Notes: a model not told the origin generated them from the sequence alone. A stretch of DNA of 64,000 nucleotides from Zygnema circumcarinatum SAG 698-1b (GCA_037447605.1 CM074816.1:697873-761872), one strand, 5' to 3'; shown: positions 1-61,887, numbered from the stretch's first letter. Translations and numbers: made by a program.

Positions 1-326
1 AAGAATCTTTTGCGAATCTGTATGATTTTTGTGATTTGTATGGCTTTTTTTCTGAATTTAGAAGTGCAGTGACTCATTGCATCTTGCAAAGCAGCAACTT
101 TTGATGTTGTGTGTCCGTGATTGCGTGGAAAACCTTTGTCGTGTAGTTGTTTTCACTCTTGGTGTGTGTACACGAGTACGTTTTAATCTCGCACTGCGTT
201 TTTGTGAGACTGCGTTTGAGTATTAGACTATAGAACGTGGAGTTGAATACCTGATTTATTCCTGTTCAGTCCAAAACCAGCCTTATCCTCTTCGTTGATT
301 TTTTTTGTCGTTGCGTATGTCTGTAG

Positions 327-3300
327 GGACCTAGGCAACAACAAACTGGAGGGGAGAGTGTCCGGCTTCATCTCTAAACTCACCCATCTGTGGTACCTGT
401 AAGCACCACTGCATCGATAACGTTGTATCTGCAGTTTGAATTTTTGCTCTCGGCCGAGCATTTGTACCTCTCAAACTATCACATTTATTTCGCGCTTGCA
501 TGAGCTTTAAGTTTATGCCATATTTTTGGTCACTTCTGTCACGGCGTGGGCTTTTTTGACGCCCAAGAACGCGCACTTTTTGCATGCAAGAGATTGGACT
601 TCGTCGTAGAGAGTTTAGGATTTAGAGTTTACGGATTAGGGTTTGGGTTCAGACTCTAAATTGTAGGCCATAAAGTTCGAGGGGTTTTAGGGGCTTATCA
701 GTTAAAGGATTCAGTATCTATGGGGGGTTAGTGGGTTCAGGGTTGATGGGATTGCAGGCAGAATGGGTGTAGGGAAAGGCTTAGAGGTTTAGGGGTTAAC
801 TATTTGCAGGCTGAAGGTTGCGTAGGGTCGTGAAGGAGTGAGAAACTTTGCAGACAGCACAAGCAAATATTTTCAGTGGCTATGACACAAGGAAGACTTG
901 AACGGGTTCTGTTGGAAAGTTCCTCTCTCTCTCTCTCTCTCTCTAACGCGCCACCCTTATTGTCATCAGGTACTTCAACAACAACAAATTGACTGGCTCC
1001 ATAACTCTTGCGAGCGATTACCTTCAGGACCTAGAGATCCAAGACAACTACTTCTCTGGGCCAATCAACATTACAAAGAATGGGCAACCTTATTGCTCCT
1101 CCAACTATGCCAACAACTGCATTTATCGCGATATCGTAGGATGTGGCGCAGCTGAAGGGGAGAGATCTCCGCAAGAGTGCGCGGCCTTCTGCCATAGCGG
1201 TTCTCCTGTGGGAGCGTGCGGGGGCCGCGGCACGTGCGGGTACGATACGGCCACGTGCACATGCGACAAGGGATATGCGCTGACATCGGGCACGTGCGGT
1301 GAGCTGCAACCTGCTGCTTGTAGATACTCGCAAGAAATGAAAAGTAATGGGTGGGAGAAGTTTTGGAAACTATCGCATTGCTATCAACTTTTACGCAGTC
1401 TTGCTGTCAAAGCACACTTAATGCGATCCATGTGATTCAGCCAATAGTAGAGGTTCACTTCTCGAAATTCTAGAAGTATATCGCAAATATTACTTGGTGA
1501 ACTCTGCAAGCTCATTCAGAACATGGTGTAGGGTTTACTAGGATGTATCAAGAGTGCCGCTTCGATATCATGTTTGAAGCTTTTGATAACCTTTTCGACC
1601 CATCCAAATCGCGTGCAAGCTACAACATATCTCGGCTCCATTTGCAATAGCTAGACAACCTGCGAGTTTGACTGTTGCGGATCTGGATGTAAAACAGCGT
1701 TTGGAAGACGCGGTGGGAGGCTCTCACTCCTCCCTTCCCTCTGCAATGTCGGAGTTTAAGTCTTTTCTTAAGCAAATTGAGCAAAGCTTTGGCGACTGCA
1801 CGAAGGTGCTCTTGTCGTCGTCTTATTTTTGGAGAGATCACATGTTTGTTGAAATCGAATGAAGGTGCTGGTGGTGCTAAAGGTGGTGGTTGTTTCAAAT
1901 GACAGTCAGTTGATACACTGCTCCACTTGGCTTTTCTTTGTCAATCGTTCTCCTTGTTCGCTCACTGTCTCTTTCTCCTTTCCCCTCGTTCTCCCGTGCG
2001 CAAACTCTCTTTTTCTCCTCTCCCCCTTCTCTTTCCTTCTCTCCCTTTCTCCTCGCCCGCTCTCTACCTTACTCTCTCTTGTGCACACGCACACACATCA
2101 ATTCCATGTCTTTGTGCTTGCAGTAAATCTGAAACTCTGGACGGATACCTCAATAGGGAACTTCCTCGTCGTGCCCTCGAATTCGTTCAACGCGTGGTCT
2201 GCCGAGGGAAACAATTCTAATATCGGAGCTCAAGTTCAGTTTTCTGACTGTACGTATTGCAACACAGCTTAGTGGGATTATCACTTGAGATATCCTTAAG
2301 CTAGTCCTGCCAATGCAACTTTCACAATACTTTCGAACCTCTCTTTAAGTGGCTACAACTTTTTCCGCCCCTTAGCATGCAGCATGCACGCGATTACTTC
2401 TACATGCATTTCTTTGGCTCGCTTTCGACGCATATAATTCATTGTCTCTGAACAAAGAAGCTCTGTTGCGATTGCAGATCCTAACGGATTTGATGGTAAC
2501 GTCGGAGCCCTGTGGTTCCTCAAGAAGGTCGGAAGTGCTTACTCTTTTCAGCAAACGCGGGGAACGTGTTTGGATGTTCCAAACAGTAGCACAGATGCCG
2601 ACACAATCTTGATTATATGGAGTGAGCTTCCGCCCTGGTTAAAACCAATACACACTACATAATTGAGCTTTCCTATACAGACTTTACGCTAGCTGGATAT
2701 TTGAGTTGATTACTTGGACATGAAACAGCGTTAAGGTACGGAAAGGATAACACGTGAGCAATGGAAGAATCGTCCAGATGCGTTTTTAGACGATTCTTTG
2801 AATGTTGTTGACTAGTCTTAGACGCTGGCATTATTCTCAAAACGCTGTGTTTGATGTCTACATGGGGTGGCCGGATGGGTTGCAGCATGCTCTGGCTCCA
2901 GCAATCAGCTGTGGACGCCCATCTTCAGCAGCTCTGTGGATTTCTCCGTTCAATGGCAGAACGTGAACTCCGGCCTGTGCCTCGACGCTACCGGGTCCCG
3001 CAATGGCGATTACTTAATTCAGTGGTATTGCAAGTCTAGTGATACTCCCGAAAACGCCAACCAGCTGTGGCTGCCACTAAAAAGTACACTTGTCAACAAC
3101 AAAGCCTGTGAGTGTCCCCGTCTTTGGCTTTGACTGAGCATGCCGGAATCGCTGCTTGCACCGCCTGCCCTGACCCTTGAGCGCTCGTCCCTGTCCCTGC
3201 CCTGTGCGTGTAGCCCCGTCCGGGCTGGCGGCGCCGCCCGCAGGCAGCGATAGCGGCACAACGCGCCTGAACGTGCTGTCGCGGCACGCGAGCTGGACGG

Positions 3301-6300
3301 ACGCCCTCCCGCCCGCCGTCGACTGGTCTCCGTACTTCGGCCCCGCCAAGGACCAGGGCGCATGCGGTGCCTAAACCCTAAACCCTCGACCCTAAACGCT
3401 ACCCCTCCACCCTCACATCCTAACCCTAAAAACCCTACACCCTTCACGCTAATGCCCTCAACTCTATACTCTTCTTCTCCACCCTCACATCCTAAACCCT
3501 AAACTCTCAACCCTACACCCTCCACCCTCACACCTCAAACCCTGAACCCTAACCCCTGTCCCGCAGGATCGTGCGCGGTGTTCGCGGCGGTGGCCGCGGT
3601 GGAGGGAGCGTTAGGCGTTACCGCACAGTTCGCGCCGTCGGCGAGCATCGCTCTCGCGGAGGCGCAGGTGGGGATGGCCTTTTCACGGGAATAGGGGGAG
3701 TCAGACCTTGACCATTGCTTACGAAATTTCCGAATTCCTTATACTAAAAGTCACTTCTTTCGTGTACGAATTCCGGGTCGGGATCCGCGGCTCCGCCTTA
3801 CACAGCCGTACCAAAATGCGTACCTAGCCAATGCTTAATTCGCCCGACAGGCTTACGAAATTGATTTGGCGATGGTCAAGGGGTCTGACTCCCCCTAATC
3901 GTAGCAAGGCGGCACCTCAGCCAAATAGTGAAAGTCAAACACTAATTGTACGGTCTTCTCTGAGAGCAGGTCGTGGATTGCTCCGTGGCCGGTTCGTGCC
4001 TGGGCGGTTGGCCCGCGCGCGTCCTCGATTGGCTCGCGGCGGCCTCGGGCGGACTCGCCACGGCGGCGGCGTACGGACCGTACAGCGCGCAGACCAAGGG
4101 CACCTGCCGGGTGGGTGGGCGTATGTGACTTTAACGGACGTGACTTTAACGGACGTGACTTTGATATGTTGTGGCGTCTTTTTAGAGATGACCTTGTGTA
4201 TACGAAATACGATTGTCGTCTTTATTGACTTTATAGGGCACGTTGACTAACTTGCATGACTTCATCAGACGTCAAATTCCCATATATGACTTTATCGAGA
4301 TAGTTCGTCGTCGCGTGCACTCGTGCTGATGCAAGCCTCCCCTTCGGCCATTTCCGAAGGTTTGATGACGTGCTTCAGGACTTTTAGGGTTTGCGCAATC
4401 TCTAGGGTTCGAAGTATGGAGGGGGGGGTTCGTACGGTTGACTGTTCTTCTGACCTGAAGTCACTTTGGTGGTGGGGACGCCGTGAATGCTGATGTACTT
4501 TTTGAGCTTGTGCGAATGCTGAGCAGGCTGCGGCCGTACAGCGGACAGTGTATGTGCTGAGATATGAGCAGGTTCCTGCGTCCAATGTTTTGGCCCTCAA
4601 AGCTGCTGTCAGCCAGCAGCCCGTCACAGCGTTCATAACTCTCACACAGCAGCTCATGGTGTGGAACACGGTGAGACAATAACACCTACTTTGAACCTCT
4701 GGTATGCGGGTTCAAGCCATCATGGCATGGGATATCCATTTTGACTGTTCATTTCTTCAATAAGTGAATCACCACGTTTCGAAGATGAAACTCTCTCTGC
4801 CTGGCTTACAAGGCTTTATATAGTATAACTGGACTTCCACGCTGCTCACTCTATTCATTGAGATTATGCTTAAAAATGTCCAAATGTCATACCCTGATTT
4901 GCTGCTTGTGTGTGTGTGTGTGTGTGTGTGTGTGTCTGTGAACACTGTGAAGTGGGACATTTTCACCGACTCAGAGGGAGCCTGCGAGGAGGACTCGCAG
5001 CTGAATCACGCCCTCGCCATCGTCGGGTACGGCAGCGAGAGCGGGGTTGCGTATTGGATCGTACGGAACTCGTTCGGCCCCGGGTGGGGCCGCAGCGGCT
5101 ACGCGCGCATCAAAGAGGGAATCTGCGGCCTCGCGGCCCTCTCCGCCCTCTACCCTGTCATCGCCCGTGAGTAGTTTCTCGCGCACGTTCCTCAAACTAG
5201 GTCTTCTAAGTATTCTGATTATAGTTATTTTTGGTATTGAGGATTGAAGCGTTGCAGGTAGTACGGTACGGCCTCTCTGTCTGGATGCTGCGTAGCAATG
5301 CAACCGTGGAACATGGCAAGTTGCATTTGTCGGGCAACGACAAGCAGTTGTTACAAACGGAGTTTCATGGCAAAATGTTGAACTCGCAAACCGTGTGCTC
5401 CTACCGGCCTTGAACGCTGCCACCTCTTACAACCTTGCACAGTTCGGACCAGTGGATCGGCAACCATTGGACAACCATTGGATGGCAATGGTTGGACGTC
5501 TACTGGTTGGCAACCAGTCGACAGGTTTGGAACCAGTGGATGCCACTGGTTGGCAACCAGTCGAATGGTTGTTTCGGTCCGCAACCACTGGTTGCCAACC
5601 AGTCAACTGGTTTGTCTAATGGTCCGATCTGTGCAACCTTGTCCAGATAGTCGCTTAGTCACAAGGCCTCTTTCCCTGCATGTGCAGCCCCTGACGGCAA
5701 CCCTTGCAATGTGAGAATCAACCCTTGTGGGAGAGGCACTTGCATAAACTCTGGGAGTTCCTACACGTGCCAATGCCCCATGCCCAAGTATGTCAATACT
5801 AGCAATACCGACAACACGCATACTTGCGCCCTCGGTAAGTGGCTTGCATTTCATTGTATCAATTGCTTTGCTTTCGTTTTTTGATCGTTACGATAGTCAG
5901 TACAGTTTGAAGCGCACTCAAAACAAGTCGTCCGATACATTTTCCATGTGCCTTTATTGAATGTCTGTTGTTGCGCTATCGCGCTCGTGGCAGTGAAAGT
6001 GTGTAGCGCCACAGCCGTGAACCCGTGCGGGGCGGGCTACTGTGTGAATGAGAACAACGGCTACTACCATTGCGTCTGCTCCGTCGGATATGTCAGTGCG
6101 AACAGCAGCGACGGCAGGCCCGTGTGCGTTCCGCGTAAGTGCTTGCTCTACTTACGGCTCCAATGTGAATGTGTGTGTTTTGGAGTTTGGAGGCATAGAA
6201 CATGAAGAAACGACTATGTATTTCTCGGTTGGGTCGTCTTTTTCGTCATTTCTAGGCGCAATTTTGCAGCTTTCATGGTTTTATTGGATTCTGCCGTATT

Positions 6301-7177
6301 GACAAAAATAAATGCTGCTGTGCAGCGGTGACAGCGAACTCGGCATTGCCGCAGACTTACACCGTCAAGGCGGGAGATTATTGCTACATGATCGCCTACG
6401 CTTACGGATTAACAATCACGCAACTGAGAAACCAAAACACGCAGGCCAATCAGGTACATGTGGCTGCTGCCGTAAAGGGCTGATGCAATAGGATGAATTT
6501 TGTTGTTACTCGCACCCTTCAATGGAAGTCCACTGGCAAAGCCTCAACTTCTCATGCGTCCTCATTTTTTTATTCCATTTATCTTCTCGTGTTGTGTCAA
6601 TGTGCAGAGCTGTGATCCGTTGATAACTGGTGTTGTCCTAAACATTCGAAATACAGCAGCAAAAACCTGCAAGGTTCTCTACACAATTCAGCAGGTCCGC
6701 TTCATGCCGACAACGCTCGAACTGCTTCTCTTTTTAAAATAGGACGAATGAAAGCCAATCTGTATGGCCAAGCTTGACCAATCAGACGCATTCTACAGTC
6801 GGAGACCGTACCTCCATTATGACATAGAAAGCAAATCACACTGTTCTTTCTAACGCTACAAAAAATCACTGTTAGTGACGGAGGTCAAATGTGTGAATGC
6901 AGGACGACTCGTGCTGGGCAATTGAAACCGTTGTCGGCCTCGCTATAGGCTCCCTCGTGAAGCTGAATCCAGGACTCATATGTGAACCCAAAAGCGGTCC
7001 TAATGGCGATCCCCTCGGCATTCAGCCAGGGCAGCAGGTGCAGTAGTACGCCAGGAACACCCCCCAAAGTGCTAATACCACCCGCCCTGAGTCTTCCTCC
7101 CCNNNNNNNNNNCTCCCCTCCCCTCCCCTCCCCTCCCCTCCCCTCCCCTGAACGAGCGAGGGAGAGCCCCCCCCGGC

Positions 7178-7209
<32 letters not shown>

Positions 7210-7822
7210 TCTGCAGGTGTGCCTGGTGGAGGGGAAGCCCGACAGCACGAAGGTGTGCATCAGCGCCGACACGGTCCTTGAGAGCGACCGCGGCAACAAG
7301 ACCTGCGCCGGCATCCTCAAGAGGACCCCCTCCTTGGCGCGCGTCGACTTCTTCGAAATCAACCGCGGCATCAACTGCGGGAACCTCTACGCGGGCCAGA
7401 CGGTACGGCACGCACATCCCATGCATGCATGCATGCATCATGCATGGGATGCACAAAGCATCCAATCACATGGCTCTAGCGTTTCTTCCCTGCCATTATG
7501 CAGCAATAGAGTACAGGATGGTTAAGGAAATCACGGGCTCTTTTGTGTGTGCTGCTGGGGAGGGCAGGTCTGCACCGGCTTCCAGGTGGTGCCTCCGGCC
7601 GCATGCAGGCCTTACTACACGTGGCAGCGAGGGGATACATGTTCGACTGTGGCTCAGCGTTTTTGCGGGGCGAGATCGCGGCTCAAGTGGAAGAAGTGCA
7701 TGGGACAAAAAACGGCTTTGTGTATCGGCTCCGGCCAGTGGGCCGTGGGGCAAGTCATCTGCGTGAAGCGACCGACGGGGTGCTTCCTTAATACGACGAG
7801 GGTGCCCTTTTGCACCGGCTGA
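327..7822 (+). CDS. Mosaic secreted-type protein A (5'-partial): LRR - EGF-like - ricin-B lectin - papain C1A protease - EGF x2 - LysM x4
   Basis: GT-AG exons join in frame: 327-398 (72-nt [27 protein letters not shown]), 970-1298 (LRR+EGF), 2124-2249/2478-2621/2886-3107 (ricin-[18 protein letters not shown]), 3214-3366 ([15 protein letters not shown]), 3567-3667 (SCAVF, Cys 3572), 3970-4110 (VVDC..CLGGWP), 4527-4670, 4953-5166 (NHA His 5007; RNS Asn 5067), 5688-5834 and 5994-6134 (EGF), 6326-6453/6608-6694/6903-7037/7217-7402/7568-7822 (Lys[14 protein letters not shown]; stop at 7822). Start codon lies left of the recognised exons. Confidence 0.88.
611..800 (+). repeat. Degenerate TTTAGGG-like (plant telomere-like) intronic tract
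   Basis: Imperfect runs such as tttaggatttagagtttacggattagggtttgggtt and ttagaggtttaggggtt inside an intron of gene A. Confidence 0.5.
3371..3556 (-). repeat. Degenerate CCCTAAA (plant telomere-like) intronic tract
   Basis: ctaaaccctaaaccctcgaccctaaac...cctaaccctaaaaaccct... fills most of the intron between two papain exons. Confidence 0.6.
3692..3897. mobile_element. MITE with GGGGG(A/T)GTCAGAC TIRs flanked by TA
   Basis: Left TA|GGGGGAGTCAGACCTTGACCAT, right ATGGTCAAGGGGTCTGACTCCCCC|TA; internal CTTACGAAA motifs; related copy at 25135-25295. Confidence 0.8.
5438..5633. mobile_element. 196-bp MITE with CACAG TIRs and 8-bp TSD (P-element-like or hAT)
   Basis: TIRs CACAGTTCGGACCA / TGGTCCGATCTGTG (1 mismatch); identical 8-bp flanks CAACCTTG at 5430-5437 and 5634-5641; three internal ACTGGTTGNCAACCAGT palindromes. 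Confidence 0.82.
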
Positions 7823-16749: not shown

Positions 16750-19700
16750 ATGCTTTCGCCCCGCGGCTCCGACCTGGACGAGCTGGAGGTGCGCCCTCCC
16801 TCCCTCCCTCTCCCTCGCTTGCCTCGCTGCGCCTCTCCCTACTCCTCCTCCCTCCGCCCCTTTGCAGCACTCCCCTTGCAGCGCTGCAGCCCAATACATG
16901 CCTCGATCAAGGTCACCCCTTCGCTTGCCAACCATGGGGCGGGCGGGCGGGAGGGTTGCAGGCGCAAGCGCGGGCATGGCTAGGGCACGTGGCGGTCCTC
17001 CCGCGGGACGTAGGGCTGGCGGAGGCTTTGGCGGGGGGGGAGGCCCTGCTTGGAGCCGCGCTGCAGCTCGCAACTATGGCGCTGCGCAGCGGGCGGGCGG
17101 ACCTGGGGGAGGCGGAAACAGGGGCGTTTCTGGCGAAGGTGCTTGAGCGGAGCGCGCTTTCTAAGGGAAAGCGAGGATCGTGGACTGCTTGGGAGAATGT
17201 GAACACCTTTTTGGAGGTGGGAAGGGGGGAGGCGGGAGAGGGGAGAGGGGAAGGGGGGGGTTGGGTATGGCTGAGCTGGAGGTGCTGTCTGCAGAGTGGC
17301 AAGTGAGTTTTCCTGGCTCGCAGATTGACTGAGGGATTTGAGTAAGTGTGGCTGAACACAAGAGGGGGTTGGCTGTGGGGATTGCCACACGTGTGCAGGT
17401 CTGTAAAGCTTTTGGGCTGCCGGATGTGGACTTGTTCTCAGTATCGGACGCGATGGAGGGGAAGAATACGAGGAGGGTCTGCCTTTGCCTGCGGGCACTG
17501 TCCCGAAAGGCGCGGGAAAAGGGACTGCCTGTAAGAGTTGGCCAGTCTTGCCTCCTCCTCCTGCTGCATGCAACTCTCACCAAACACAAGGGAAGGAAAG
17601 CTTCATGCTCTTACTCGCCAGAACTACTGCCTATCATAACATTGAAGGCGTGGCAAGGAGCGGACTTTCCTTCTCAGTCAAAGCTGGGATTTTTTTTGTG
17701 GAATTTTTCAGGTAGTCGATTTCGACAGAGTGCTGGATGCCCCCAAATCGCCACAAGTGAGCATACTCACACCATCCTCAAGCGTTTAAGAACCGATAAT
17801 ATAGACTCCATTCCAGGGAGGCTCAGTGCGGCGTTGTATGGTGTGATGGCTGTTCTTTCCTTTGGAGACTTCTCCTCTCTCATACGCAACATCTGGAAGT
17901 TTGCAGTCAGTGGGAGGCTCGTCGGGAGGGAATTCGCCACTCGGCTCCCCAACATGGCCTTCACCTGCAACAGTTATGGAGGTTAGTTGGTTGGTTGGTC
18001 GATTCTGCTCCATTCTGCTTTCACTCTGCCGATGCAACAAAGCTTTTGGGCTGTAATCTATTCACGTGATTCACGTGCCTCTAGAATGTGTGCATGTCGT
18101 CGGGTGGGGTTCGTGAGCCCTCTCGCCGTCTCTCCGTCTCTCCCTCTCTCTCTCCCTCCCTCCTCCCGCCCTCAGTACGCCCTCCCTCTCCCAAAGCTCT
18201 CTCTATGCCCTCAAAGTTGGGACTTGGTTTGTGGGGCAGCTGCTGGACATGGACGAACTCCCTCCGGGCCTGGGCGGCCGGAAAACGACAGAAATGCGCC
18301 GGATGCGGGCTGCAACCCCTCCGGTGAGTGCCACGTGGCGCCACGTGGTTTGCTGGAGAGGCTGCTTTGGAGCCGTCACACGTGTCTCTCAGCCCTGCCT
18401 TATCCTTATCCAGCGCTCATAGCTACAACATGCATTATTTTTGTTTTTATGAGAAGACTATGTCCAGGAGTCAAGGAGAACCTTCTTATCCATGCATGCA
18501 TATGCATGCATGAAGTCAAAAAGAGGTTTGAGTCGGAATGATAATGCGGGATGCTCACCCGCACACACCACCACCACCATCACCTGTTTCTATGCTCATG
18601 AATCCCCATGCATGCAAACTGAACTGCGTGAAGGTGAAATCCTACGCAGGATTTCGATTTCCGTGGAACGCTGAAGCGCATGGAGGCAGGCTGCCCCCTG
18701 CCGGCAGAAACTGCACCGCAGAAGGTAAAGCTGCTCTTTTTCGAACTTTTTTTATGTTTGAGACCAGCCTGCTGCCCCCATTGTTTCTTTGAGGGCCAAC
18801 CTGCAAGAGGGCGGGCTTTAGTCGAGCTTTAGGTGCCAAGCATTGGCTCGGAGCCAAGCATTGGCTCGGAATCTCCCCCTCACGGTGCAGTAGAAGGGGG
18901 TGGGGTTGGCAGGCTCAAAGGAATCAGGTGACAGCTGGCATTAGGGCTGCGCTGGAAGCCATGGCGGAACTGGCAGGAGGAGAGGAGGCGGTGGAGGGGG
19001 CGGGCAGCTCCAAAGAAAGGCAGGGAGGGGCTATAGGCGGAGCCTCGAGGGTGCAGGAGAAGAGGGAGAAGGAGAAGAGGGAGAAGGAAGAGGAGAAGGA
19101 GAAGGTGAAGGAGATGGTGCAGGGGAAGAGGCAGAAGGCGGAGGAGGAGAAGGTGCAGGAGAAGAGGGAGAAGGAAGAGGAGAAGGAGAAGGTCAAGGGG
19201 ATGGTGCAGGGGAAGAGGGAGAAGGCGGAGGAGGAGAAGGTGCAGGAGAAGAGGGAGAAGGAAGAGGAGAAGGAGAAGGTCAAGGGGATGGTGCAGGGGA
19301 AGAGGGAGAAGGCGGAGGAGGAGAAGGTGCAGGAGAAGAAGGAGAAGGAAGAGGAAAAGGAGAAGGTGAAGGAGATGGTGCAGGGGAAGAGGCAGAAGGC
19401 GGAGGAGAAGGTGCAGGAGAAGGAGAAGGAAGAGGAAAAGGAGACGGTGAAGGAGATGATGCAGGGGAAGTGGGAGAAGGCGGAGGAGGAGAAGGTGCAG
19501 GAGAAAGAGAAGGAAGAGGAAAAGGAGACGGTGAAGGAGATGATGCAGGGGAAGTGGGAGAAGGCGGAGGAGGAGAAGGTGCAGGAGAAGAAGGAGAAGG
19601 CAGAGGAGAAGGAGAAGGTCAAGGAGATGGTGCAGGGGAAGAGGGAGAAGGCGAAGGAGGAGAAGGTGCAGGAGAAGAAGGAGAAGGAAGAGGAAAAGGA

Positions 19701-31400: not shown

Positions 31401-31937
31401 CAAATACTAAGCCCAGCACTAAAAGACAAACAAGCATCACTGACATCCCATCTACTTAACCCTGACAATAGATCTTGAGCCTTAGCAGTGACAGTCCCTG
31501 ATTGGCCTACTGCCCACTGAGAGGCCTGACTGACTACGTGGAGACTTCTGATAGGTCAATGAACGACAATCGGCGGCATCATGCGGCGCTTCCGAGTGCG
31601 CCTTGCTGGATGGTGTGCTGTTCCGTGGGCCGCCAATACATGGCGCCGCCTTTGCGCATTCTCCGTCGGCAACTCCTGGATTATGCCGGTCCGTGACACT
31701 GAATATGAATATGTCAAGTACAACTGAACGGACGCGGATCCGTCGAACGCAGCTCCGTTGTGCTACACCTGGTTTTCTGTCTGCTCGTGCTCGGGCCGCA
31801 TAATACCGTACAGTCGTACGACCGTACGACCGTACATGTTGGAAAGGCGTTGTAAATTAATATATATCAGCCGTTATCTATTCGTCACAGTTGTATAATA
31901 TAATATATAATATATAATCGTAACTAATCCATCCCTA
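25411..31937. mobile_element. Non-autonomous hAT DNA transposon carrying a nested retroelement
   Basis: TIRs TAGGGATGG (25411) / CCATCCCTA (ends 31937), Ac/Ds-like; exact 8-bp TSD GTAACTAG at 25403-25410 and 31938-31945; subterminal CCGTACGA repeats; no transposase ORF seen. Confidence 0.88.
25596..30957 (-). mobile_element. Decayed Ty3/gypsy LTR retrotransposon (gag-like, aspartic protease, RT remnants)
   Basis: Protease AMIDTGA..VLS (27841-28089) and LLGSDWL; RT remnants DGTLRFC, WAVLPFGLK, YVDD, KIEAI..FLG (about 26640-27400) broken by stops and frameshifts; LTR-like direct repeats from 25603 and 30762 (CAAGATAAGTGGGGTTAAGAGGAGA...TAATGAAGGGTTGGGTTGGTTCTG); PBS-like TGGTGCTCGGTGCGGGG on minus (about 30746-30763). 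No integrase recognised. Boundaries tentative. Confidence 0.82.
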
Positions 31938-52793: not shown

Positions 52794-55700
52794 ATGGCGG
52801 CCGCCACGCGTCTCCTCGCCATCGTGCTTCTCTTGGCGAGGGCAATGTCTGCCTTGGCGGCAGGTGCGAGGGGCGGGAGTAATGGGAAGGGCGAGCGGGA
52901 GGTGGGGGGGATTGGAGGGGATTGAGTGNNNNNNNNNNAGGGCGGGCGGGCGCTGACTGCCTGCTCCTGCTCGCGGGTGGTGAGGGGGTGCAGACTCCCT
53001 GATCGCCGCGCAGGGCCTGTGGGTGCTCGCGCAAGGGCCCTCCTCCTCCTCCGCCTTCGCTTTCAGGCAGGCGCAGGGAAGCAAGTGCTTCGGCGTGCCT
53101 GGCGGCAGCAAACAAGGGAGCCTTGTCATACAGATTTTTGGTGCGTCTCCTGCATCCTGTACTGCAGAATACTGAGACAGAATCATAGTTCGATTTCGAA
53201 GCGAAATTAGCGAGTAGAATTTCAGCACTTTTCCTTGTAAGTTTGTATGCTTTGGATTTTAAGGTCACACTGAAAGATGGAGCTCCTTAAACCATCACGA
53301 TATTCACAATCATGTCCTTGCAGGAAAGCAAGAAGCAAGAAGCAAGGCTACTGTTCAAAATTTATAAAAGCTGTTGTTGCATTTTTTCTTGTCGTTCAAA
53401 CATGGTGTCACCTGGACCCCTCTTTTTGGTGATTACTGATTCGTCTTTTTTACTATCTGTGCTATGTGGTGTGTAGAGTGCGATTATGGCTCATCCCAAA
53501 TGTTCATTCCCATATACCAGCAGTCCGCAGGCCTTGCTGTGCAGTGGCAAAATGTGGCGTCGGGAAAGTGCCTGGACTCGAAGACTGGGACTAAAGGAAC
53601 CACTGTAGTTCAAAGGGCCTGTGCTGCTTCAGAGGCTACAATGACAAGCCAATTGTGGAGAGCTCTTTCTCTCGCTAGTTTCCAAATGCTGTGTGAGTAC
53701 CCTCTCCCTTCCCTCTCCTTTTCTCTCACTCACCTGTATGGCACACTCCTTTCCCTCTATTTCCTCCCCTCTCCTCTCCTCTTCTCTCACTTTCCCTTTC
53801 AATCTTCTTTCTCTTTCTTTTTCTTCCTTTCTTCTTTATCTTCCCTCTCCTATCTTCCTCCCTTTCTCTCTTTTCCCTCTACCTTCTCTCCCGACCCGGC
53901 CGCATTGTTGGAACATTGGCAGTAGTGATTCTGACTTTGGTAATAGCTTACTAGTGGACAGTCACCTAGTGCTTGTATAAATACTATCAACGTGAGGCCG
54001 GAGATTACGACAAATCGCCGAATTTAGTGAATCAGTGGCGGTGAAAGTACACCGTCTTCTTTGAACTCGACTGTCAGTTGAATCAAACTGCGAGTTGAAA
54101 GCTGAACTGGACATGTAATCAGGATTCAGTCAAATCCGCGCCATGGTTGAGCCCTGCGCATGCTTGGAGTACCGCATTATCTCTTCAGGGGAGGGGTCCT
54201 AAGTGGTGGAACCTGAAAGAGAACATGCGATTGTTTTGGGGCTGGATAGGGCGTGTAAGTCACTCCGAAAACGAATATTCTAAGAGTATATCAAGCATCA
54301 TGATGATGAATCGGAAAACATACTTTGGTCCTTACATATCACGCGTCCATTTCAACGATGACTCCTTGGAGTTCCATGATCGGCGTCACTGAATGAACAA
54401 CTTTTGAACGCTTGCACTCCTTATTGAAACTTTTACGTCCTACATTCTCAGCAAAGATTTATCTTCAAACTCATTTCAAGCATTGAAAGTAGGCCTGTTG
54501 CCTCGTTTGAAAGTAGAATCAACGTTCCGCTTACTAGAGGATCTGACTTGAAGTTGCCAGTTTCAACCCTCGCCTTCTTCGTGTTCTATGGATTGGATAC
54601 CAATCCATAATCTGCTGAAAGGGAGGATATACAGTCCGAGTTCCCACTCCATTCCTGCGTGGATTTGGAGTTTTATGGTATTTGAAAGCTTCACGGCTTC
54701 TATCTTGATAGCATTTTCAGGAAAGCGTCATTCCAGAAAGGATTTCGGAACCAAGCCATGGCACAAGAAAGAAAGAGCAAAAAAAGAGGGGAAACGACGG
54801 TGACATCGTTTCCATCGTTCACCTCTTAGTCCACATGGGCAAAAATGCTTGTGAGACGCATGAAATTAGAACGACTTCATTCTGAGTCCAGAATTTTGAC
54901 CCTGCTCCATTTTTCTGTTTATTTTCTGTTATGTTTCTCTTGCTTGTGCAGTTATCCCACCTCCCCCTCCTCTGAGGCCTCCCCCGCCCCCTCCAAGCCC
55001 GCCTCCACCTTCGCCTCCACCTCGACCTCCACCTCGATCTCCACCTCCAACTCGACCTCCACCTCGGTCTCCACCTCCACCTCGTTCTCCACCTCCTCTC
55101 AAACAAAGTCCACCACCAAGAATGCCTTCGCCTCCTCCACCCTCGCCTCCACCCCCGGCTCCGCCTGCGCCTCCCCCGCCTGCCCCTTCTGCAGAAGGTA
55201 ACGAACACCTGTACTTTGCCTTGAATTCGCCTTCCAAAAGGGATTCGTATTGTCAGTATGAAGGAAGAAGCGTATTCTCGCATCTATGNNNNNNNNNNTC
55301 AGCTCAGCGGCAGCATTTCACCTTCGATTGGCAACCTGGCGTTCCTGTTGACTTTGTGAGCAGCACTCTCCTTGGAACCATCAGAACTGAGGGAGGAAAA
55401 GTCAATGTTGATGTATTCTTTTGTTATCTACGAGAAGCTCTCTTCACCCCTTAACAGTAACACCCGAGGAGGAAGGTGCCTTGCCGTCTGCCCACATAGC
55501 GGAATTCTGAATCATTCGCTTTGCTTGTCAAAATGTTCACGATTGCATCTGAGATCACCGCGTTTCACATATTGCAACGAAGCCCTTACAATTCCGTGTG
55601 TTTCTCTGAACATTCAGGGATTTGTCAAACAATAACTTCACAGGCACTATACCGGATTCAATCGGAGGTCTGCAAAGCCTGAAACTACTGTATGTTGCTC

Positions 55701-58700
55701 CGTTTCACCCAATACTTCCAAGTCAATCCGGTGCAAAAATGATCTGCTGGAATGGCCTCTTATCTTGTTGCAACGTTGTCTACAGCCTGCCTGTTTTCCT
55801 ATGATTAGCCGAGTCCGTGATAGGATGGAAAAGCTAGTTCAGCTAGTAGTAGTAGCTAGTTTAGTAGCTAGTTTAGTTAGGAATGTGTTTTCAGACATGA
55901 AGGATTTGGCTTCCTTCTAATGCCAATCTGTTGCATACTGAGCAGTTGTGGGATGTTAAATAGTGGCTAGTCGTATTGAATGGTTTCCTCCAAAGATAGC
56001 TAGAAGTACTCTTTGGATGCAGCTGCGTGGGGAGAGCCATAAAATGTTGATGCACCATGGCAGTTTGTTTTAGTACCCACTTCTGAACGAATACATCAGG
56101 CAAAAATAACATGACGGAGCTATTGTAACATTTTTCTTTTCCCACTTGTTGCAGGGACTTGTCAAATAATCAATTGACTGGGAGCATTCCCTCTTCCCTT
56201 GGAAATGCCACTGCTCTAAGGACCCTGTGAGTGGCAAACCGGTTTCTAACCATGACTCTGCTTTTATCTGTGATCTGTAACACTGATGGTGCAGAATTTT
56301 AAGTTCTTGAAGGGGAATCAATCGGAAATGTTAATTCTCGAAATTCGTAGTTCTTTGGAGGGCATTTAAGGATTTTGAACTGCCTCCAGGTTTCAATTGT
56401 GTACATCTTTTGCATAAGTCTTTCACTTGCTGGGACCAGCTGAAGGCATTCTCATGAGCATCATAGCATATAGAGATGGATTGGATGATCTTGATCTTTC
56501 TACGTTTGGCTTAACGAAAATCGACAACTTGGCGCATGATTACAGAAACTTTGGCAACAATTTACTGAGCGGCGCCATTCCTCCAATAATTGGGACCCTC
56601 AACAGCCTCAAGTACTTGTAAGTGTGTGTGGCCTGTTTTCGTGGCAATGATCTCTCGTGCATTTTTTATTCGTTTCCAGGAAGGGAATGTAGAGGAGGTA
56701 GGAGCAGAAAAATGTGACTATAGGCCTCCGTGGCAGTCTGCCTCTCAGTAAAACACATGAGGTCAATTTCGAGTGATTTCTGGAATATTCCACAGGGTTC
56801 ATTGACTCTTTTGCGTCCTCATTCACAGGACTTTATCCTTCAATCAACTTACAGGTGGTGTTCCTGCAAGCCTCGGTGGGCTTTCGGCTATCAAGACGAT
56901 GTAAGCTGACTGAGGACGAACTGTACAATCAAACGCTCAACTCATTTGAAGTAGCTGAAGCTAAACTTTCATGAGGCAAATGATTTTCCAGACTTAGGCC
57001 TCATAGTTTAAGCGGGTTAGGCCATAGCTTGACCGATCCGTCCCATACGCTAAGCTCAATGCGCGAGCGCTGAAATTCAGAGTCCAAGTCAAATTCGGAA
57101 CGCTCAGAACGCGATCCTGTGCTGTGCTGTGCAGTTCTCTTGCAAATAATCTGCTCATTGGACCCCTAGTTGTCGACTTCGGGTTAATCGGACAGGCAAC
57201 CTTCGACTTCAGTAACAACTACTTGTCGGGTGAATACACCGTCAAAGTGAACGGGATTGTTGCACAGTGTACTGGCATTGGTATGAACTGCTTTTCCGAT
57301 TCAAATGTGAGTTCGTGCAGTCCTCAGAGAGACGCAGCTTCCTGCGCTCTGTTCTGCAATGCGACTCAGCCTCAAGGCGCATGCGGAGGAAACGGCTTCT
57401 GTTATCTTAACGGAAGCCAACCCACATGTGCATGCACTAGCGGCTTTGTACCCTCCGCCAATAATGTCTCCTGCGTGTTTGGTGAGTGCTACATACCTCT
57501 TTCCCCTTCTGACTCGCTCTCTACTCATAGACCTGTCAACATAGGAGCTTTAACTTGCTTACGTAACCGTTCAACCTGATCTGTAGATGGGCAGGTTGGA
57601 TGGTGTTCTTAATTTTTTTGAGCTTCCAGGTTCAAAGTCTGTTTACTTTTATGTGCTGTTGGATTCACACAGTGAAAAAAAATCTGTGCAGAGGGGCGTG
57701 GGTCTGGTCTCAATCTGACAACTGCCCTTATTACAAAGGTGAATCCCTATTTTCGGTATGTAAGCTCGGGCTATTTGAGGCGAAGAAGCGGCAAAGGTTC
57801 GTGGCAGGTCGCCATTTCGTGGAACTGGACTGAAGAGGGAGCTGTTCAGAGCATCAAAGATCAAAAAAATTGCAGTAAGTGCACTTTTTTTTAGCAGATT
57901 CTTGCTCAACTCGACTGCTTGTTCGTTTTTTAGTTCTTTTAGAAAGACTGGTCCTTTGATCCCTTCCTACAAATTAGCCTATGTTCATCAATGGCCTCCA
58001 AACCTCTAATCCTCATCTCATCTTCCTGCATACCGCATCGTCTCTTCCATCACAAGTGCTTCTCCTGTTCTGATGAACTGAACACGAGCGTTATGTTTTG
58101 CGTAATTGTAGGCACTTGTTGGATATTCGCTCCGATATCTGCGATAGAAAGCGCCCTGTACATCGCAAGCGGTGGGCAGTCTCCGGTGCCGCAATTGGCG
58201 GAGGATCAGGTCCTGACCTGCTCGGGGAGCAACAAAACGTGCGGGGCCGGAGGGTGGCCCACAGAGACGCTCGAATATGCCTTGAGCAACAACTTACTGC
58301 TGCAATCCAACTTCGTGGACTCTTCCAGCTGCGGACAGGTAAGAACATTCTAAAAGAGATACGATCAAACTTTTGTCACTGCATCTACTCATGGCGTTCG
58401 CCATTCACGAGACTCTTTAAAACCCCTGCCAACTGTATCGGCACTTCCCCGAGCTTACAGTTTGTGTGCGGAGTCTGCAGGGCGACAATGCGCTGAGAGT
58501 GTCCTCCTACGAGCAGGTGCAGTTCAACGGTTGGCTCGGCCTCCTGCTCATCCTGCAGCAGCAAGTGGCCGTTGTCACTATTGAGGCGTCCGGCGATAGC
58601 TTCATCAATTACAACGGAGTAAGATCAGTGTGAATGCTTCTGTTACCTTCCGTCCACATATTTTACGTCGCCGAACCATTTTGTGTCTTTCACGCCTGTA

Positions 58701-61700
58701 GAAACGTTTATTGATCAGTTAAACTTGATCATGCATCTGAAGATAGTGATTGACAGCGGGTAACCTGGAAAGAATGATGTCTCCGGAGACTTGAAAACCT
58801 TCGCAATTTGATCATATCCTTTATTTGGAAGACTGTAGATGGGCCCAGCTAATGAAAGCTGCATCATTCAGACCCCCCCCTATTTTCAGTGTGTAGATCT
58901 GTTTCAAGTCTACACCCTCGCCTTCCACAACCATCATAACTTTGCATTGTGCTGTTGGTATGCAGGGCGTATTCGACGACGAAGATTGCTTTTCGAACGG
59001 AGTGGATCACAGCGTGGTGGTGGTCGGATACGACCTGAGCGCGGATCCACCCTTTTGGATCCTCCGCAACTCGTGGGGGCGCAACTGGGGCGAGCAGGGT
59101 TACATGCGCCTCAAAATATCCGCCGGGGCGGGGATATGCGGGATCAATAGCCTGCCCGCCCTCATGCCCGTCGTCAGATCCCAAGGTAAGCTGCATTGTG
59201 CTGCATAGAGGGAGGGACTTGAGATGGATGTGATAGATTTGATGTGCGTTGTACTTTTGGAGCATCCGCAACGGGAGATTGGAGGGTCGTATGGGAACAT
59301 GCAATTAGCAGTTGGAAAGGCCCCTGCTTTTTGTTGAGAGTCGTCGTTCCTTTCACTGTAGGAGCGGTTCGCACTTTTTTGAAGTCCCCATCCTTCTCTG
59401 GGCTGACCACTGGGCCTCAAGCTATGGTAGAAGAAGTGCTTTCGCTACCCATTTCTGCATCTCACGGCAAATCTGGGAATTGGAAGCGTCTTCTAATGTG
59501 ACCTCTCCCTTCGGCCTTCGTTGAGTGCAGTTGGCGATCCATGCTTCAGGAATAACTATGCGAGTGTGGTCCTGAAGAATGTGAATGGCCCCGGCGGAGT
59601 GAACCCCTGTGGAAACGGCATCTGCATTCCTGCGGGGTCGACCAACCTCTGCCACTGCTCGGAGGGCTTTGTGGCGGTCACTAACAACGACTACTCGCAA
59701 ACCTGCGCACCCCGTGAGTGCTTCCTTCAACAAAGGGCTCTTTGGGTACCGTTTCACTGCTTAGATCATTCATTTCACTTATGATTTTCTCCTTCAATTT
59801 GCGTGAGGAATGTCAAACAGTGAATATGGGCACATCAGGACCCCCCTATGCCTGTGTGTGAATATCCTCCCCATCTTCACAGAGCCTTGTTCTCAAGTTG
59901 TATTGGCGGTCGTGCAGTGTCTCCATGCAAGTTTGCGTCACGGAATCCGTGCGGCGTTGGAGAGTGTTTGGATGCCGCGGCGCCTCTGGGAACGTACCAA
60001 TGCTTGTGCCCCATCGGCTATGCGCCCGACTCCCCGGAGGGCACGCTCACGTGCTTGCCAGGTAGATATCTCCTCGTCACTCGTCAATTGTAAACTATGT
60101 CAAAGAACTCCATTCTTGCATCCGGTATTATTAGCCTAAAACAGATGTGCCCCATTTGATTATCTTAAGCATAATTTGGCCGTTTCTGTGGCCCGTCGGT
60201 ACCTCATCCTAACTGAGCAACTTGTCAAACAAGGGAGGGCAGTCTGTGAGACTTCTCCGACTAACGGCTACCAACGTTCTGTGCAGCGGCTATGGTGGAC
60301 GGGCAGCAGAACTTTACAGTGCCCATTGGCACAAACATAAGTTGCCCTACCGTTTACAACATGTATGGCATCAGCAAAGCCACGTTTTTGGACCAGAACA
60401 AAGTAAGTAATGGTGAACGCTTCTCGCCCTCTCTAGCTCAGTCGTGCAGAAAATCTTCCCAATAGGTCTGTGTTGGCGCATCAACTCTCCGAAAAACGAA
60501 AAGTTATCTCCACGGTTTTTTTCTACCGCTGAGCCAAACCATCATTTCCTCTCACAAATTGAATTCCAAGGGGAATATGAAGCTGACGGAGACCTTCACA
60601 TCGTGCAGAACTTGAGTTGCCAATCGCCACTTCCAGAAGGCACGGTTGTGAATGTCACCAATTTCCAAAACTGCTCCGTCGTTTACGCCGTCAATGCGGT
60701 GAGCACCGTCTGCATGCTCAGCTCCCTGTTTATACTTGTCTCCGTTCTGTGTGCTTGCCTGCTCGCATTTACTCCATTGGTCTCCACTCATCCTAAAGCA
60801 CTGTGAGGAGGCTGAAGGCTACTTGTAAACTCACCTTCTGTCCTATCCATGCTGCAGGGTGACACGTGCGACTCCATCGCAACAGTGTTCAACGTGACTT
60901 CAATATCCGGCCCCGATTCACCAAATCCTGATTTGGACTGCTCACAGCTCATGCCTTTCCAACAGGTATGCCTGCTCAGACCTATCGTAGTAGGGCGACA
61001 TTTTGCTGCAGAGCATTCCATTTCCTGACTCACTGACGCATGGCAGTTGTTGAAGATGAAGAAAATGGGACTTTCGGTCGTTAATAATGTTCCAAGTGGG
61101 AGTAACCCGTGAGTTACTATGGAAGAGGTCAGCTTTACTTCTTTTGAGATTGATAGCATGTGAGCTCGTCGTGCAGGTCTGCATTCAAAGAGGGCCCCTC
61201 GAATACATCGGACCATGCGTTCGGCCATATGATGTTCAGAATGGCGAGTCCTGCTATTCGATAATATCAGAGTATCTCGATGATGATATTTGGAAATTTT
61301 ATAAGCTCAATCCTGGCGTCTTTTGTGGCAAACTGCTGCTTCCTACCAGCGGCAGCAGTGTGCTTGGCCAACAGGTGAGACGCTGCTCAAGCAAATGCAT
61401 TTCAACACCACTCAGTTTCATATTCATGTGATCTCAATGTTGGAGTATCACTACATGCCTCAAGTCGTCTACTCATCGAAACTGAACAGGAGATGAGTGG
61501 CTGACTTCACTGACTAATTGGCAAGTCAGACCTGCATTGACGGTCTTACTAACATAGCTAATCGCCAGGATTTACGATAGTTTTCTTTTTGGTCTTCTTG
61601 AGTGATCTGCTTGGTTCACTTATGTTTTTTTTTTAGATTTATTTTTTAATATCTTGCGCTGTCATTGCGTGCTTGTGCAGGTCTGTCTGGCAGCAGCGGA

Positions 61701-61887
61701 TGTGGGACTGAGTGCGACCTGCACGCAGAAATCCATCCTCCGAAAAGCAACGTACACCTGCGCCAGTCTGTCAAAGTGCTTCACGAAAACCTTAACCTTC
61801 AAGTCATTGAATGGCTTCGCGTGCACTGCAGCAGCGTTGAAAAAGAAGACGCAAGTATGCGTTCCGAAGACGAGTTCATGTAACTGA
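52794..61887 (+). CDS. Mosaic secreted protein B: signal peptide - ricin-B - Pro-rich linker - LRRs - EGF-like - papain C1A - EGF x2 - LysM x4
   Basis: Exons 52794-52863 ([23 protein letters not shown]), 52994-53140 and 53477-53692 (ricin-[18 protein letters not shown]), 54952-55197 (SPPP-rich), LRR exons 55299-55355 (cut by gap), 55618-55689, 56155-56226, 56546-56617, 56829-56900 (72 nt each), 57135-57481 (LRR+EGF), 57692-57874 ([18 protein letters not shown]), 58112-58338 (STCW, Cys 58117), 58481-58618, 58966-59185 (DHS His 59008, RNSW Asn 59068), 59531-59713 and 59918-60061 (EGF), 60287-60402/60609-60698/60858-60965/61177-61374/61681-61887 (LysM). Confidence 0.9.

Follow-up and report, generated by a model that had tools for sequence, protein, structure and literature searches.

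The gene at positions 327-7822 on the forward strand of a 64,000-nt window (the whole stretch of DNA analysed) from Zygnema circumcarinatum SAG 698-1b, here called copy A, is a real, transcribed and correctly spliced single gene. Its product reads, in this order, as LRR, LRR+EGF, ricin-B lectin, papain protease, two EGF and four LysM modules. Comparison with a second gene on the same strand of the window (52794-61884, copy B) and with public proteins places it in a large Zygnematophyceae family with a constant protease-EGF-LysM chassis and exchangeable N-terminal heads. LRR and LysM ectodomains are the building modules of land-plant surface immune receptors. Among the algae most closely related to land plants, LRR, LysM and lectin modules are coupled to a protease where the receptors have a kinase, and this combination occurs in some hundred diverged genes from at least four genera.

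Gene model and transcript support

The model of copy A was built by eye and by script. Its 3′ part with 17 exons is visible, and the 5′ end lies to the left of the window (Table 1). All introns (16 of 16) have GT..AG borders, and translation of the model gives an open, partial reading frame of 907 codons, free of stops and frameshifts up to a TGA codon at 7820-7822.

RNA contigs from three studies support about 15 of the 16 joints. Spliced contigs in runs X7, X10 and X12, which represent these three studies, cover joints 1298/2124 through 6694/6903. Among them are the joint of the LRR+EGF exon to ricin (1298/2124, in a contig of X7), 2249/2478, 2621/2886 (in three runs), the joint of ricin to protease (3107/3214), 3667/3970, 4110/4527 and 5166/5688; RNA joints also flank exons 7, 12, 13 and 14. 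Joints 4670/4953 and 7037/7217 were seen as loose contig ends, the letters of which are the start of the next exon. None of the spliced joints is present in the DNA run X1. One further joint found in three RNA runs, 2581/2902, has AA..AG borders and breaks the frame; it was rejected as splicing because its loose letters differ from the window at several places, and it represents a near-identical second copy or allele, aligned piecewise.

The assembly gap between exons 15 and 16 is surrounded by (CTCCC)n and (CTGC)n repeats, and these exons have phase 0 on both sides of it. In three RNA runs contigs pass from 7037 into TGCCTGGTGGAGGGGAAGCCCGACAGCACG, which corresponds to 7220-7249 of exon 16, indicating that the gap intron is spliced out and that the frame is continuous.

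The gap, the missing 5′ end and the shortness of the RNA contigs (about 150-350 letters, no single one spanning the whole gene) could suggest an artefact, that is, a pseudogene, an assembly mis-joined at the gap, or lectin/LRR and protease genes read as one. This explanation is largely refuted. Overlapping spliced contigs chain exons 2-16 in frame across the gap intron, the 907 codons are uninterrupted, and in a relative that is 43% identical to copy A, P0009, a single 2.9-kb transcript contig encodes ricin, protease, EGF and LysM. We regard an artefact as extremely improbable.

Table 1. Coordinates of copy A, of the assembly gap and of copy B in the 64,000-nt window
Feature	Position	Strand	Content and evidence
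Exon 1 (visible part)	327..398	+	One 24-residue plant-type LRR; 72 nt; phase 2 at both ends; AG/GT sites, open frame
Exon 2	970..1298	+	Last LRRs and Cys-rich EGF-like module; 329 nt; ends in phase 1; weak Pfam EGF matches
Exon 3	2124..2249	+	Ricin-B (beta-trefoil) lectin, first third; 126 nt; phase 1-1
Exon 4	2478..2621	+	Ricin-B lectin, second third; 144 nt; phase 1-1
Exon 5	2886..3107	+	Ricin-B lectin, last third; QxW-type motifs; 222 nt; phase 1-1
Exon 6	3214..3366	+	Linker with motif LN..SRHAS, then mature N-terminus of protease, VDW...KDQGAC
Exon 7	3567..3667	+	Active-site helix of protease, GSCAVFAAV, with catalytic Cys; translation and alignment
Exon 8	3970..4110	+	Protease; Pfam Peptidase_C1 E 3.4e-5, 24.5 bits (cut-off 20.7)
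Exon 9	4527..4670	+	Middle of protease; alignment
Exon 10	4953..5166	+	C-terminal part of protease with His (LNHA) and Asn (RNSF); Peptidase_C1 E 8.7e-16, 59.1 bits
Exon 11	5688..5834	+	EGF module 1; 147 nt; phase 1-1; Pfam EGF E 5.6e-5, 23.8 bits (cut-off 21.5)
Exon 12	5994..6134	+	EGF module 2; 141 nt; phase 1-1; weak Pfam EGF-type matches
Exon 13	6326..6453	+	Start of LysM 1; 128 nt; Pfam LysM E 2.6e-8, 34.1 bits (cut-off 20.9)
Exon 14	6608..6694	+	End of LysM 1 and start of LysM 2; 87 nt; family LysM profile
Exon 15	6903..7037	+	Remainder of LysM 2; 135 nt; Pfam LysM E 0.023
Assembly gap	7103..7112		Within intron 7038-7216, among low-complexity repeats
Exon 16	7217..7402	+	LysM 3; 186 nt; weak Pfam LysM match and family LysM profile
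Exon 17	7568..7822	+	LysM 4 and Cys-rich end; 255 nt; weak Pfam LysM match, family LysM profile
Copy B	52794..61884	+	Modelled gene; first exons tentative; Pfam matches
Copy B ricin-B exons	53014-53692	+	N-terminal
Copy B Pro-rich extensin-like exon	54952-55197	+
Copy B LRR exons		+	Five, 72-nt class
Copy B LRR+EGF exon	57135-57481	+	347 nt
Copy B protease	57692-59185	+
Copy B LysM	end 61884	+	Five exons, 116/90/108/198/204 nt

The protease domain

Pfam was run on copy A exon by exon, and Peptidase_C1 lies above its cut-off in exons 8 and 10; the relative P0009 reaches 128 bits. Translation and alignment show that the catalytic Gln19, Cys25, His159 and Asn175 (papain numbering) are all kept in copy A, in the motifs KDQGACGSC, LNHA and RNSF, together with partner cysteines of the three conserved C1A disulfides (in DC, SCLGGW, GTC, GAC and GICG).

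Pfam gave no match to an Inhibitor_I29 prodomain in the upstream exon or in the relatives, even at E 10. Solved papains and pro-enzymes align from mature residue 1 to the C-terminus (E ~1e-31) and nowhere upstream. In the alignment, a short conserved motif alone, LN..SRHAS or NPYFRYAS, precedes the mature protease, and we speculate that LN.F..H might be a relic of the I29 GxNxFxD motif. Papain-like proteases normally rely on their prodomain for folding, and activity of the predicted protease without one is not certain.

The missing prodomain, used for folding and latency, would fit a protein that does not work through its protease but binds, provides a scaffold or acts as a decoy for inhibitors that parasites produce, with the papain fold serving as structural core. 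The same can be said of three Mesotaenium relatives that have lost the catalytic Cys, P0151 and P0152 with Ser and P0154 with Gly in its place, which means that part of the family can do without catalysis. Against this stands the retention of Gln, Cys, His and Asn and of the disulfide cysteines in copy A and equally in copy B and in P0009 and P0019, the closest relatives of copy A, and we consider such a non-proteolytic role very unlikely.

LysM, ricin-B and LRR modules

A LysM profile built from the family detects four LysM modules in the joined copy A protein. The modules are split by introns, and in the per-exon scan exon 13 is above the Pfam cut-off and three of the four modules fall below it. 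Structure tests were done on a relative of copy A. For P0009 and its tail, AlphaFold gave mediocre models (mean pLDDT 63 and 66); they leave the head unmodelled and do not show how it lies relative to the active site. The P0009 model contains LysM strand-helix-helix-strand units, and its single LysM superimposes on those of fern, horsetail and Volvox chitinases with 1.1-1.3 A rmsd at 31-33% identity. The best multi-LysM structure matches were chitin-binding Ecp6, NFP, CEBiP and the LysM part of an NlpC/P60 endopeptidase.

The ricin exons were scored singly and stay under the Pfam cut-offs. For exon 5 the shortfall is small for both Ricin_B_lectin (E 1.2e-5, 25.9 bits against a cut-off of 29) and RicinB_lectin_2 (E 2.8e-5, 25.1 against 25.6), and exon 4 matches RicinB_lectin_2 with E 0.0016 (19.5 bits against 25.6). 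QLW and QWQ motifs are visible in the region, and exon 3 aligns with the ricin region of P0009.

The LRR motif L..L..L.L..N.L.G.IP is visible in copy A, with only about two repeats lying within the window. The LRR exon alone (23 residues) has no Pfam match; the copy A LRR can be aligned both to the LRR exons of copy B and to P0152, itself a protein with Pfam LRR matches. The C-terminus of copy A shows neither a membrane span nor a GPI-type tail and has no hydrophobic stretch.

Comparison with copy B

The first-pass annotation had recognised an independent gene built on one exon scheme in both copies: a 72-nt LRR exon, an LRR+EGF exon, two EGF exons and five LysM exons with matching boundaries. 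Our models agree. The LRR, LRR+EGF, EGF and LysM exons of both copies share alignment place and phase, and 12 of 13 comparable introns are common to both at the same place and phase. The EGF exons measure 183 and 144 nt in copy B and 147 and 141 nt in copy A. A papain intron of copy A, 3668-3969, is absent from copy B.

The same annotation also ascribed one module set to the two genes. The modules are indeed shared, but their order differs, and the three ricin-B exons of copy A (2124-3107) had been overlooked. Copy B starts with a signal peptide, followed by ricin-B, a Pro-rich extensin-like region, LRR, LRR+EGF, protease, two EGF and LysM, so that ricin is N-terminal in copy B and stands directly before the protease in copy A. 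The Pro-rich extensin-like exon was seen only in copy B, the 5′ end of copy A being off the window. The ricin cassette of copy A consists of three symmetric phase 1-1 exons placed in a phase-1 intron, and in copy B the same phase-1 intron joins the EGF exon straight to the protease exon. Such an arrangement bears the signature of exon shuffling.

Strong divergence of the two proteins, noted at first pass, is borne out by 30.5% identity over 518 residues, a level at which dN/dS between the copies is saturated; the LRR+EGF exons are 29% identical, and exon 5 of copy A and its N-terminal ricin exon counterpart in copy B share 35% of their residues. The copies are separated, again as first described, by unrelated genes, namely Exo84, KIN17 and a DEAD-box helicase, and by retroelement remains. 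Both copies are expressed according to the RNA runs. For copy B, a fraction of 0.34-0.36 of its words is present in RNA runs of two studies, approximately the expectation from exons alone.

Phylogeny, size and distribution of the family

A tree of the protease together with the tail, with ordinary plant papain-like proteases as the root, recovers the family as one clade (SH-aLRT 99, and 94 for the protease alone). The two papain domains thus belong to a single C1A clade, a result that speaks against convergent fusions in unrelated clades and for the earlier view that the architecture is not a chance fusion. Copy A lies in clade I with two transcript-derived proteins, and copy B groups with proteins of Closterium and Mesotaenium in clade III (support 99). 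As the copies fall into separate deep clades of one rooted family, their split predates the divergence of the genera Closterium and Mesotaenium, in line with the old age proposed for the family.

The proposed expansion is supported as well: the papain-then-LysM layout occurs in at least 95 public 90%-identity protein clusters. Closterium, Mesotaenium and Spirogloea account for nearly all of these, and every one is labelled hypothetical or unnamed. Genetic transformation and gene editing are reported for Closterium, so the family is accessible to experiment. The heads found among the clusters include LRR, legume-lectin, chitin-binding and EF-hand types, and in copy A an LRR-EGF head is paired with a ricin cassette immediately upstream of the protease. 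Signal peptides are visible in copy B and P0152. To this picture the locus adds two deep clades 45 kb apart, the ricin exon cassette and a settled assembly gap.

The family had also been called diversifying. Swapped heads and deep divergence bear this out, but positive selection does not: variants in copy A across runs comprise 15 synonymous and 12 non-synonymous changes and look like purifying, not positive, selection.

The layout was reached by way of one relative. A HMMER search with the 71-residue protease exon returned mostly ordinary papains, a LysM tail being present in 4 of the best 150. Copy A's own protein was not among the HMMER matches, suggesting that the protein libraries lack the annotation of this genome. 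When P0009 served as query, whole or as tail only, word-based searches gave almost nothing, ESM Atlas returned plain papain clusters only, and the tail of P0152 revealed the family. In literature searches we found no description of a LysM-papain protein in streptophyte algae.

Proposed function

We consider the product of copy A to be, more likely than not, a secreted, sugar-anchored C1A protease carrying LRR, EGF, ricin-B and LysM modules, with defence as its most likely setting. Secretion is predicted from the signal peptides of copy B and relatives and from the modules, each of a disulfide-rich type belonging to extracellular proteins. The LysM tail and the lectin would hold the enzyme on GlcNAc- or galactose-bearing polymers, candidates for which are microbial chitin or peptidoglycan, or glycoproteins in the wall of the alga itself. 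The LRRs could supply protein or peptide contact, and the protease would then cut proteins at the docked surface, most likely in defence against wall-bearing parasites and bacteria. The recognition or defence role, which we infer, is the weakest step. Should docking and cutting on microbial walls be true, the family would constitute a separate effector-type branch of green-lineage defence, and also a clear case of domain shuffling via symmetric exons.

A secreted protein of the same architecture might instead act on the alga's own surface. The modules would hold it in the own wall, and its jobs could be wall or mucilage glycoprotein remodelling in growth, filament or cell separation, or conjugation, which would make it a new class of wall-remodelling enzyme. 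The extensin-like Pro-rich exon of copy B, typical of wall proteins, is consistent with this, as is the expression of both genes in RNA from presumed ordinary cultures of several studies, with no sign of a need for induction; the coding variants likewise appear constrained rather than shaped by an arms race. However, LysM is best known as a binder of GlcNAc polymers, and we know of no GlcNAc polymer in the walls of Zygnematophyceae algae. Large copy number and head swapping are also more typical of recognition families. We therefore hold action on the own surface to be possible though unlikely.

A more elaborate form of the defence reading, which we think improbable, is a kinase-free extracellular surveillance system in one molecule, in which the head replaces the prodomain and docking frees the protease. 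The LRR, lectin and EGF head would keep the protease shut until head and LysM tail had docked on a foreign wall or ligand, at which point the active site would open. One secreted protein would then both recognise and attack, or release signalling fragments, and new specificities could arise by exon shuffling of heads.

Relation to known systems

The C1A fold, catalytic residues and disulfides of copy A are those of RD21/oryzain-type proteases. In the tree these proteases form the nearest outgroups, with P0155, an oryzain alpha chain, branching just outside the family. Both groups have a Cys-rich C-terminal extension and use the secretory pathway (predicted for copy A). RD21-type enzymes, however, consist of an I29 prodomain, the protease and a granulin tail, whereas copy A has no prodomain and a tail of two EGF and four LysM modules, and its LRR, EGF and lectin heads stand where the RD21-type prodomain would be.

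A hydrolase combined with tandem LysM modules that hold it on GlcNAc polymers, as predicted for copy A, is also known from the bacterial NlpC/P60 D,L-endopeptidases with LysM repeats (T. thermophilus 4uz2/4xcm, LytE 8i2e) and from the LysM chitinases of ferns, horsetail and Volvox (4pxv, 5ylg, 5bum, 5k2l). NlpC/P60 enzymes are Cys-His enzymes of the papain clan. Copy A differs from both groups in that its catalytic domain is a eukaryotic C1A protease, its LysM modules are C-terminal, four in number and Cys-rich, and LRR, EGF and ricin are added.

Amon, Haas and Sumper (Plant Cell 10:781) reportedly described in 1998 a pheromone- and wound-induced cysteine protease of Volvox carteri with LysM-type chitin-binding repeats and an extensin-like spacer. 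It is said to be secreted and papain-type, with N-terminal binding repeats and no LRR, EGF or ricin. If so, this protein would be the nearest described precedent for a LysM-protease fusion and would have arisen independently in a chlorophyte; no Volvox protein was among the sequence matches of our searches.

Several disulfide-linked extracellular LysM modules are shared with the plant LysM receptors (CERK1, CEBiP, NFP, LYK3, EPR3). Relatives of copy A give weak Pfam matches to LysM_RLK, LysM3_LYK4_5 and LysM1_NFP_LYK, and Foldseek with the relative's model lists NFP, CEBiP and CERK1. The receptors carry three LysM in one globule with a membrane span and kinase or a GPI anchor, whereas copy A has four LysM and neither type of attachment. 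Agreement in overall fold is poor, with TM values of 0.2-0.3 on the mediocre model of the relative.

The 24-residue LRRs resemble those of plant LRR receptor-like proteins and kinases and of LRR-extensins, and LRX proteins combine extensin and LRR as copy B does. Unlike the LRR receptors, copy A has no membrane span or kinase, and its LRRs are followed by EGF and protease. Copy A carries one LRR per 72-nt exon, and one LRR per exon is found also in SERK-type genes.

Gene structure and expression

The gene at the left edge of the window (gene A) was modelled from the sequence and its stop-free stretches as 17 exons ending in a TGA at 7820-7822. All of its introns are GT..AG and the joined frame stays open over 907 codons; because the first visible exon begins in phase 2, the start of the gene lies left of the window. 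For 1260-7259, the contigs of a DNA run and of three further runs that appear to be RNA, these from three studies, were compared with the window. The RNA contigs carried the spliced joints listed in the table, none of which was present in the DNA run over this interval. A loose RNA contig end at 4670 bears the first letters of exon 10, and RNA-run depth tracks the exons. The RNA contigs are short, yet overlap exon by exon, and therefore the LRR/EGF, ricin and protease exons are chained in one frame. Joints 398/970 and 7402/7568 lie outside the RNA-covered joints (the latter beyond 1260-7259) and are taken from the sequence model.

The sole N run within gene A (7103-7112) falls in a low-complexity intron between exon 15 (end 7037) and exon 16 (start 7217). 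Each of the three RNA runs has a contig that extends to 7037-7040 and then on for another 154-176 letters beginning TGCCTGGTGGAGGGGAAGCCCGACAGCACG, which is exactly 7220-7249; this junction was read from the contig letters, as 7113-7259 is masked as a repeat and no joint was drawn there. The gap-bearing intron is thus removed by splicing, and since the exon edges on both sides are in phase 0, exon 15 reads on in frame into exon 16 and the gap costs no coding sequence.

Over gene A, the contigs of the four runs differ from the window at 27 exonic (15 synonymous, 12 non-synonymous) and 10 intronic positions, a crude count that suggests purifying selection and part of which may stem from a near-identical second copy, not from alleles. 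One RNA run (X10) has a cluster at 4991-5048 with eight differences in 131 letters, including E490D, N495S and I500L, and at the loose RNA contig end at 2581 (region 2581-2902) several letters differ from the window. The differing contigs point to a second expressed allele, a strain variant or a recent paralogue, roughly 94-95% identical.

Features of gene A and of the second mosaic gene, copy B, in the window
Feature	Position	Strand	Basis or content
Gene A	327-7822	+	17-exon model
EGF-like	gene A, end of exon 2	+	Pfam, single exon
Ricin-B lectin	gene A, exons 4 and 5	+	Pfam, slightly below cut-offs
Peptidase_C1	gene A, exons 8 and 10	+	Pfam, above cut-off
EGF	gene A, exons 11 and 12	+	Pfam, single exons
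LysM	gene A, exon 13; exons 15-17	+	Pfam, single exons; exon 13 above cut-off, exons 15-17 weakly
Spliced joints, 5′ part	1298/2124, 2249/2478, 2621/2886, 3107/3214, 3366/3567, 3667/3970	+	RNA contigs
Spliced joints, 3′ part	4110/4527, 5166/5688, 5834/5994, 6134/6326, 6453/6608, 6694/6903	+	RNA contigs
Copy B	52794-61884	+	signal peptide; two ricin-B exons; Pro-rich extensin-like exon; five 72-nt-class LRR exons; LRR+EGF exon; four protease exons; two EGF exons; five LysM exons
Short high-copy element	3689-3900		gene A, intron 7
Short high-copy element	5440-5640		gene A, intron 10
TTTAGGG-like repeats	600-800		gene A, intron 1
CCCTAAA-like repeats	3370-3560		gene A, intron 6

Protein modules and protease domain

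Pfam scans were run on single exons. With a LysM profile built from the family, the joined protein was found to hold four LysM modules, each split by an intron; its C-terminus has no hydrophobic stretch. Translation and alignment showed that the protease retains the Gln, Cys, His and Asn residues (KDQGACGSC, LNHA, RNSF) and the cysteines of all three papain disulfides. An I29 prodomain was absent from gene A, with no match even at E 10. Solved papains and pro-papains align with the family protease from mature residue 1 on only, and the approximately 30 residues upstream of the mature N-terminus hold a family-conserved motif, LN..SRHAS, with NPYFRYAS as its counterpart in the other clade.

Comparison with the second gene of the window

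A tblastn search of the window with the joined gene A protein located copy B at 53.4-60.1 kb. The first-pass annotation had described the two genes as sharing module set and exon scheme at high sequence divergence, with housekeeping genes between them. LRR, EGF, ricin, protease and LysM modules do occur in both; the position of ricin differs, being N-terminal in copy B. The common exon scheme is borne out by the family alignment, where 12 of 13 copy B introns from the LRR+EGF exon onward match gene A in place and phase; the protease intron 3668-3969 is extra in gene A. Divergence is high, with 30.5% identity over 518 residues (ricin 35%, LRR+EGF exons 29%), and Exo84, KIN17, a DEAD-box helicase and retroelement remains lie in between. 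The ricin cassette of gene A consists of three phase 1-1 exons, 126, 144 and 222 nt long, and occupies the exact site of the one phase-1 intron that separates EGF from protease in copy B; judged from this arrangement, it looks like a module insertion by exon shuffling.

Copy B is expressed as well: 0.34-0.36 of its sampled words are present in each of five runs from two studies, about the share expected from exons alone. One assembly gap of this gene (52929-52938) is inside the first intron, and the donor of the first exon is ambiguous (52863 or 52901). A second gap (55289-55298) interrupts the first LRR exon, in its 5′ part or at its acceptor, and hides how phase 1 of the extensin exon gives way to phase 2 of the LRR exons.

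Distribution and age of the family

In an exhaustive search with the protease exon, the 150 best hits included four relatives that share the tail: P0009 and P0019 (transcript-derived, runs SRR8128902-07), one Closterium and one Spirogloea protein. When the tail of a Mesotaenium protein served as query, 181 proteins were listed, and at least 97 public 90%-identity clusters among the fetched proteins combine a papain domain with one to four LysM modules. The opposite order is seen in two fungal (Rhizoctonia) clusters, leaving at least about 95 with LysM behind the protease, nearly all from several Closterium strains and Mesotaenium, with a few from Spirogloea and transcriptomes; every one of them goes by the name "hypothetical" or "unnamed". 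The heads of the relatives, according to precomputed Pfam lists, are LRR, PF00139 (which we take to be the legume-lectin family), PF00187 (presumably the hevein-type chitin-binding family), EF-hand families, or none.

In a protease-domain tree of 85 proteins all LysM-tailed members fell into one group (SH-aLRT 94), not into unrelated C1A clades as convergent fusions would have it. When protease and tail were used together (79 proteins of the family, with seven ordinary papain-like proteases of plants as the root), the family formed one clade (support 99). Gene A groups with P0009 and P0019 in clade I (support 99), Spirogloea, Closterium and transcriptome members make up clade II, and copy B joins Mesotaenium and most Closterium members in clade III (support 99). 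The split between gene A and copy B therefore predates the divergence of those genera; the finer branching is untrustworthy, as the trees come from quick searches and their branches are long. The earlier view of an old, expanded family, not a chance fusion or a pair of unexpressed copies, is upheld by these deep clades, the number of clusters and the expression of both genes.

A 1898-aa protein of Closterium sp. Naga37s-1 (P0015, CAI5502628.1) contains two complete LRR-EGF-protease units, with EGF and four LysM modules behind the second. Annotation has probably fused two tandem genes of the family here, in which case tandem arrays would exist in Closterium as well. EF-hand, Peptidase_C1 and LysM occur jointly in the precomputed Pfam lists of Closterium P0219 and P0228, and also in those of Rhizoctonia solani P0251 and P0260 and Pleurotus djamor P0265; in the two Rhizoctonia proteins LysM is N-terminal and the protease C-terminal. 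The basidiomycete proteins could reflect independent fusion or transfer.

We found no description of LysM-papain proteins in streptophyte algae in the literature. A Volvox LysM cysteine protease, reportedly described by Amon et al. in 1998, would be an independent case. What the gene A locus adds is the deep division of the family into clades, the cassette of ricin exons, the occurrence in several genera and a clear answer on the assembly gap.

Predicted structure and possible role

P0009 is 43% identical to gene A over 794 residues, and its AlphaFold models are good for the protease and LysM modules 2-3 only. With the tail model, Foldseek returned chitin-binding Ecp6 first, followed by NFP, CEBiP, SleL and the LysM part of an NlpC/P60 endopeptidase, with poor global scores for all of them. 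Taken singly, LysM domains from chitinases of fern, horsetail and Volvox match the model at 1.1-1.3 Å, which supports true LysM folds in the predicted modules. Plant LysM receptors form a packed three-LysM globule, whereas the P0009 tail model gives no support for such packing.

By descent, gene A stands closest to the oryzain/RD21 type of plant papain-like protease; in the way it would work, LysM-anchored wall hydrolases come nearest. Gene A is a spliced member of the family with the architecture given above and intact catalytic residues. Its product would most likely be secreted, its LysM and ricin modules may anchor it on glycans, and the protease would cut proteins at that surface. We rank defence against wall-bearing microbes as the first candidate role and remodelling of the alga's own wall as the second. 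In three Mesotaenium (Mesen1) relatives the catalytic Cys is replaced (GASWAF in P0151 and P0152, GGGWAF in P0154), with the remaining protease and four LysM modules kept; these may be pseudo-proteases. They would speak for a non-catalytic role, which is however unlikely for gene A, as it keeps its catalytic residues.

Repeats and other features of the window

The intron 7 element of gene A (approximately 212 bp, with 19-25-nt terminal inverted repeats) looks like a MITE by its structure, and the intron 10 element consists of nested ACTGGTTGSCAACCAGT palindromes. Summed contig depth of the DNA run is about 1.4e5 at the former and 4.7e5 at the latter vs. a few hundred nearby. Degenerate telomere-like repeats occur in introns 1 and 6, in opposite orientations. 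Elsewhere, an 896-codon stop-free stretch at 18793-21480 (+) overlaps Gly/Glu-rich and Pro/Ser-rich low-complexity frames and has no Pfam match. Identical open frames lie 1484 bases apart (31485-31856 and 32969-33340; 32040-32534 and 33524-34018) and flank a gap at 32614-32623; this repeat at 31485-34018 reflects either tandem duplication or an error of the assembly.
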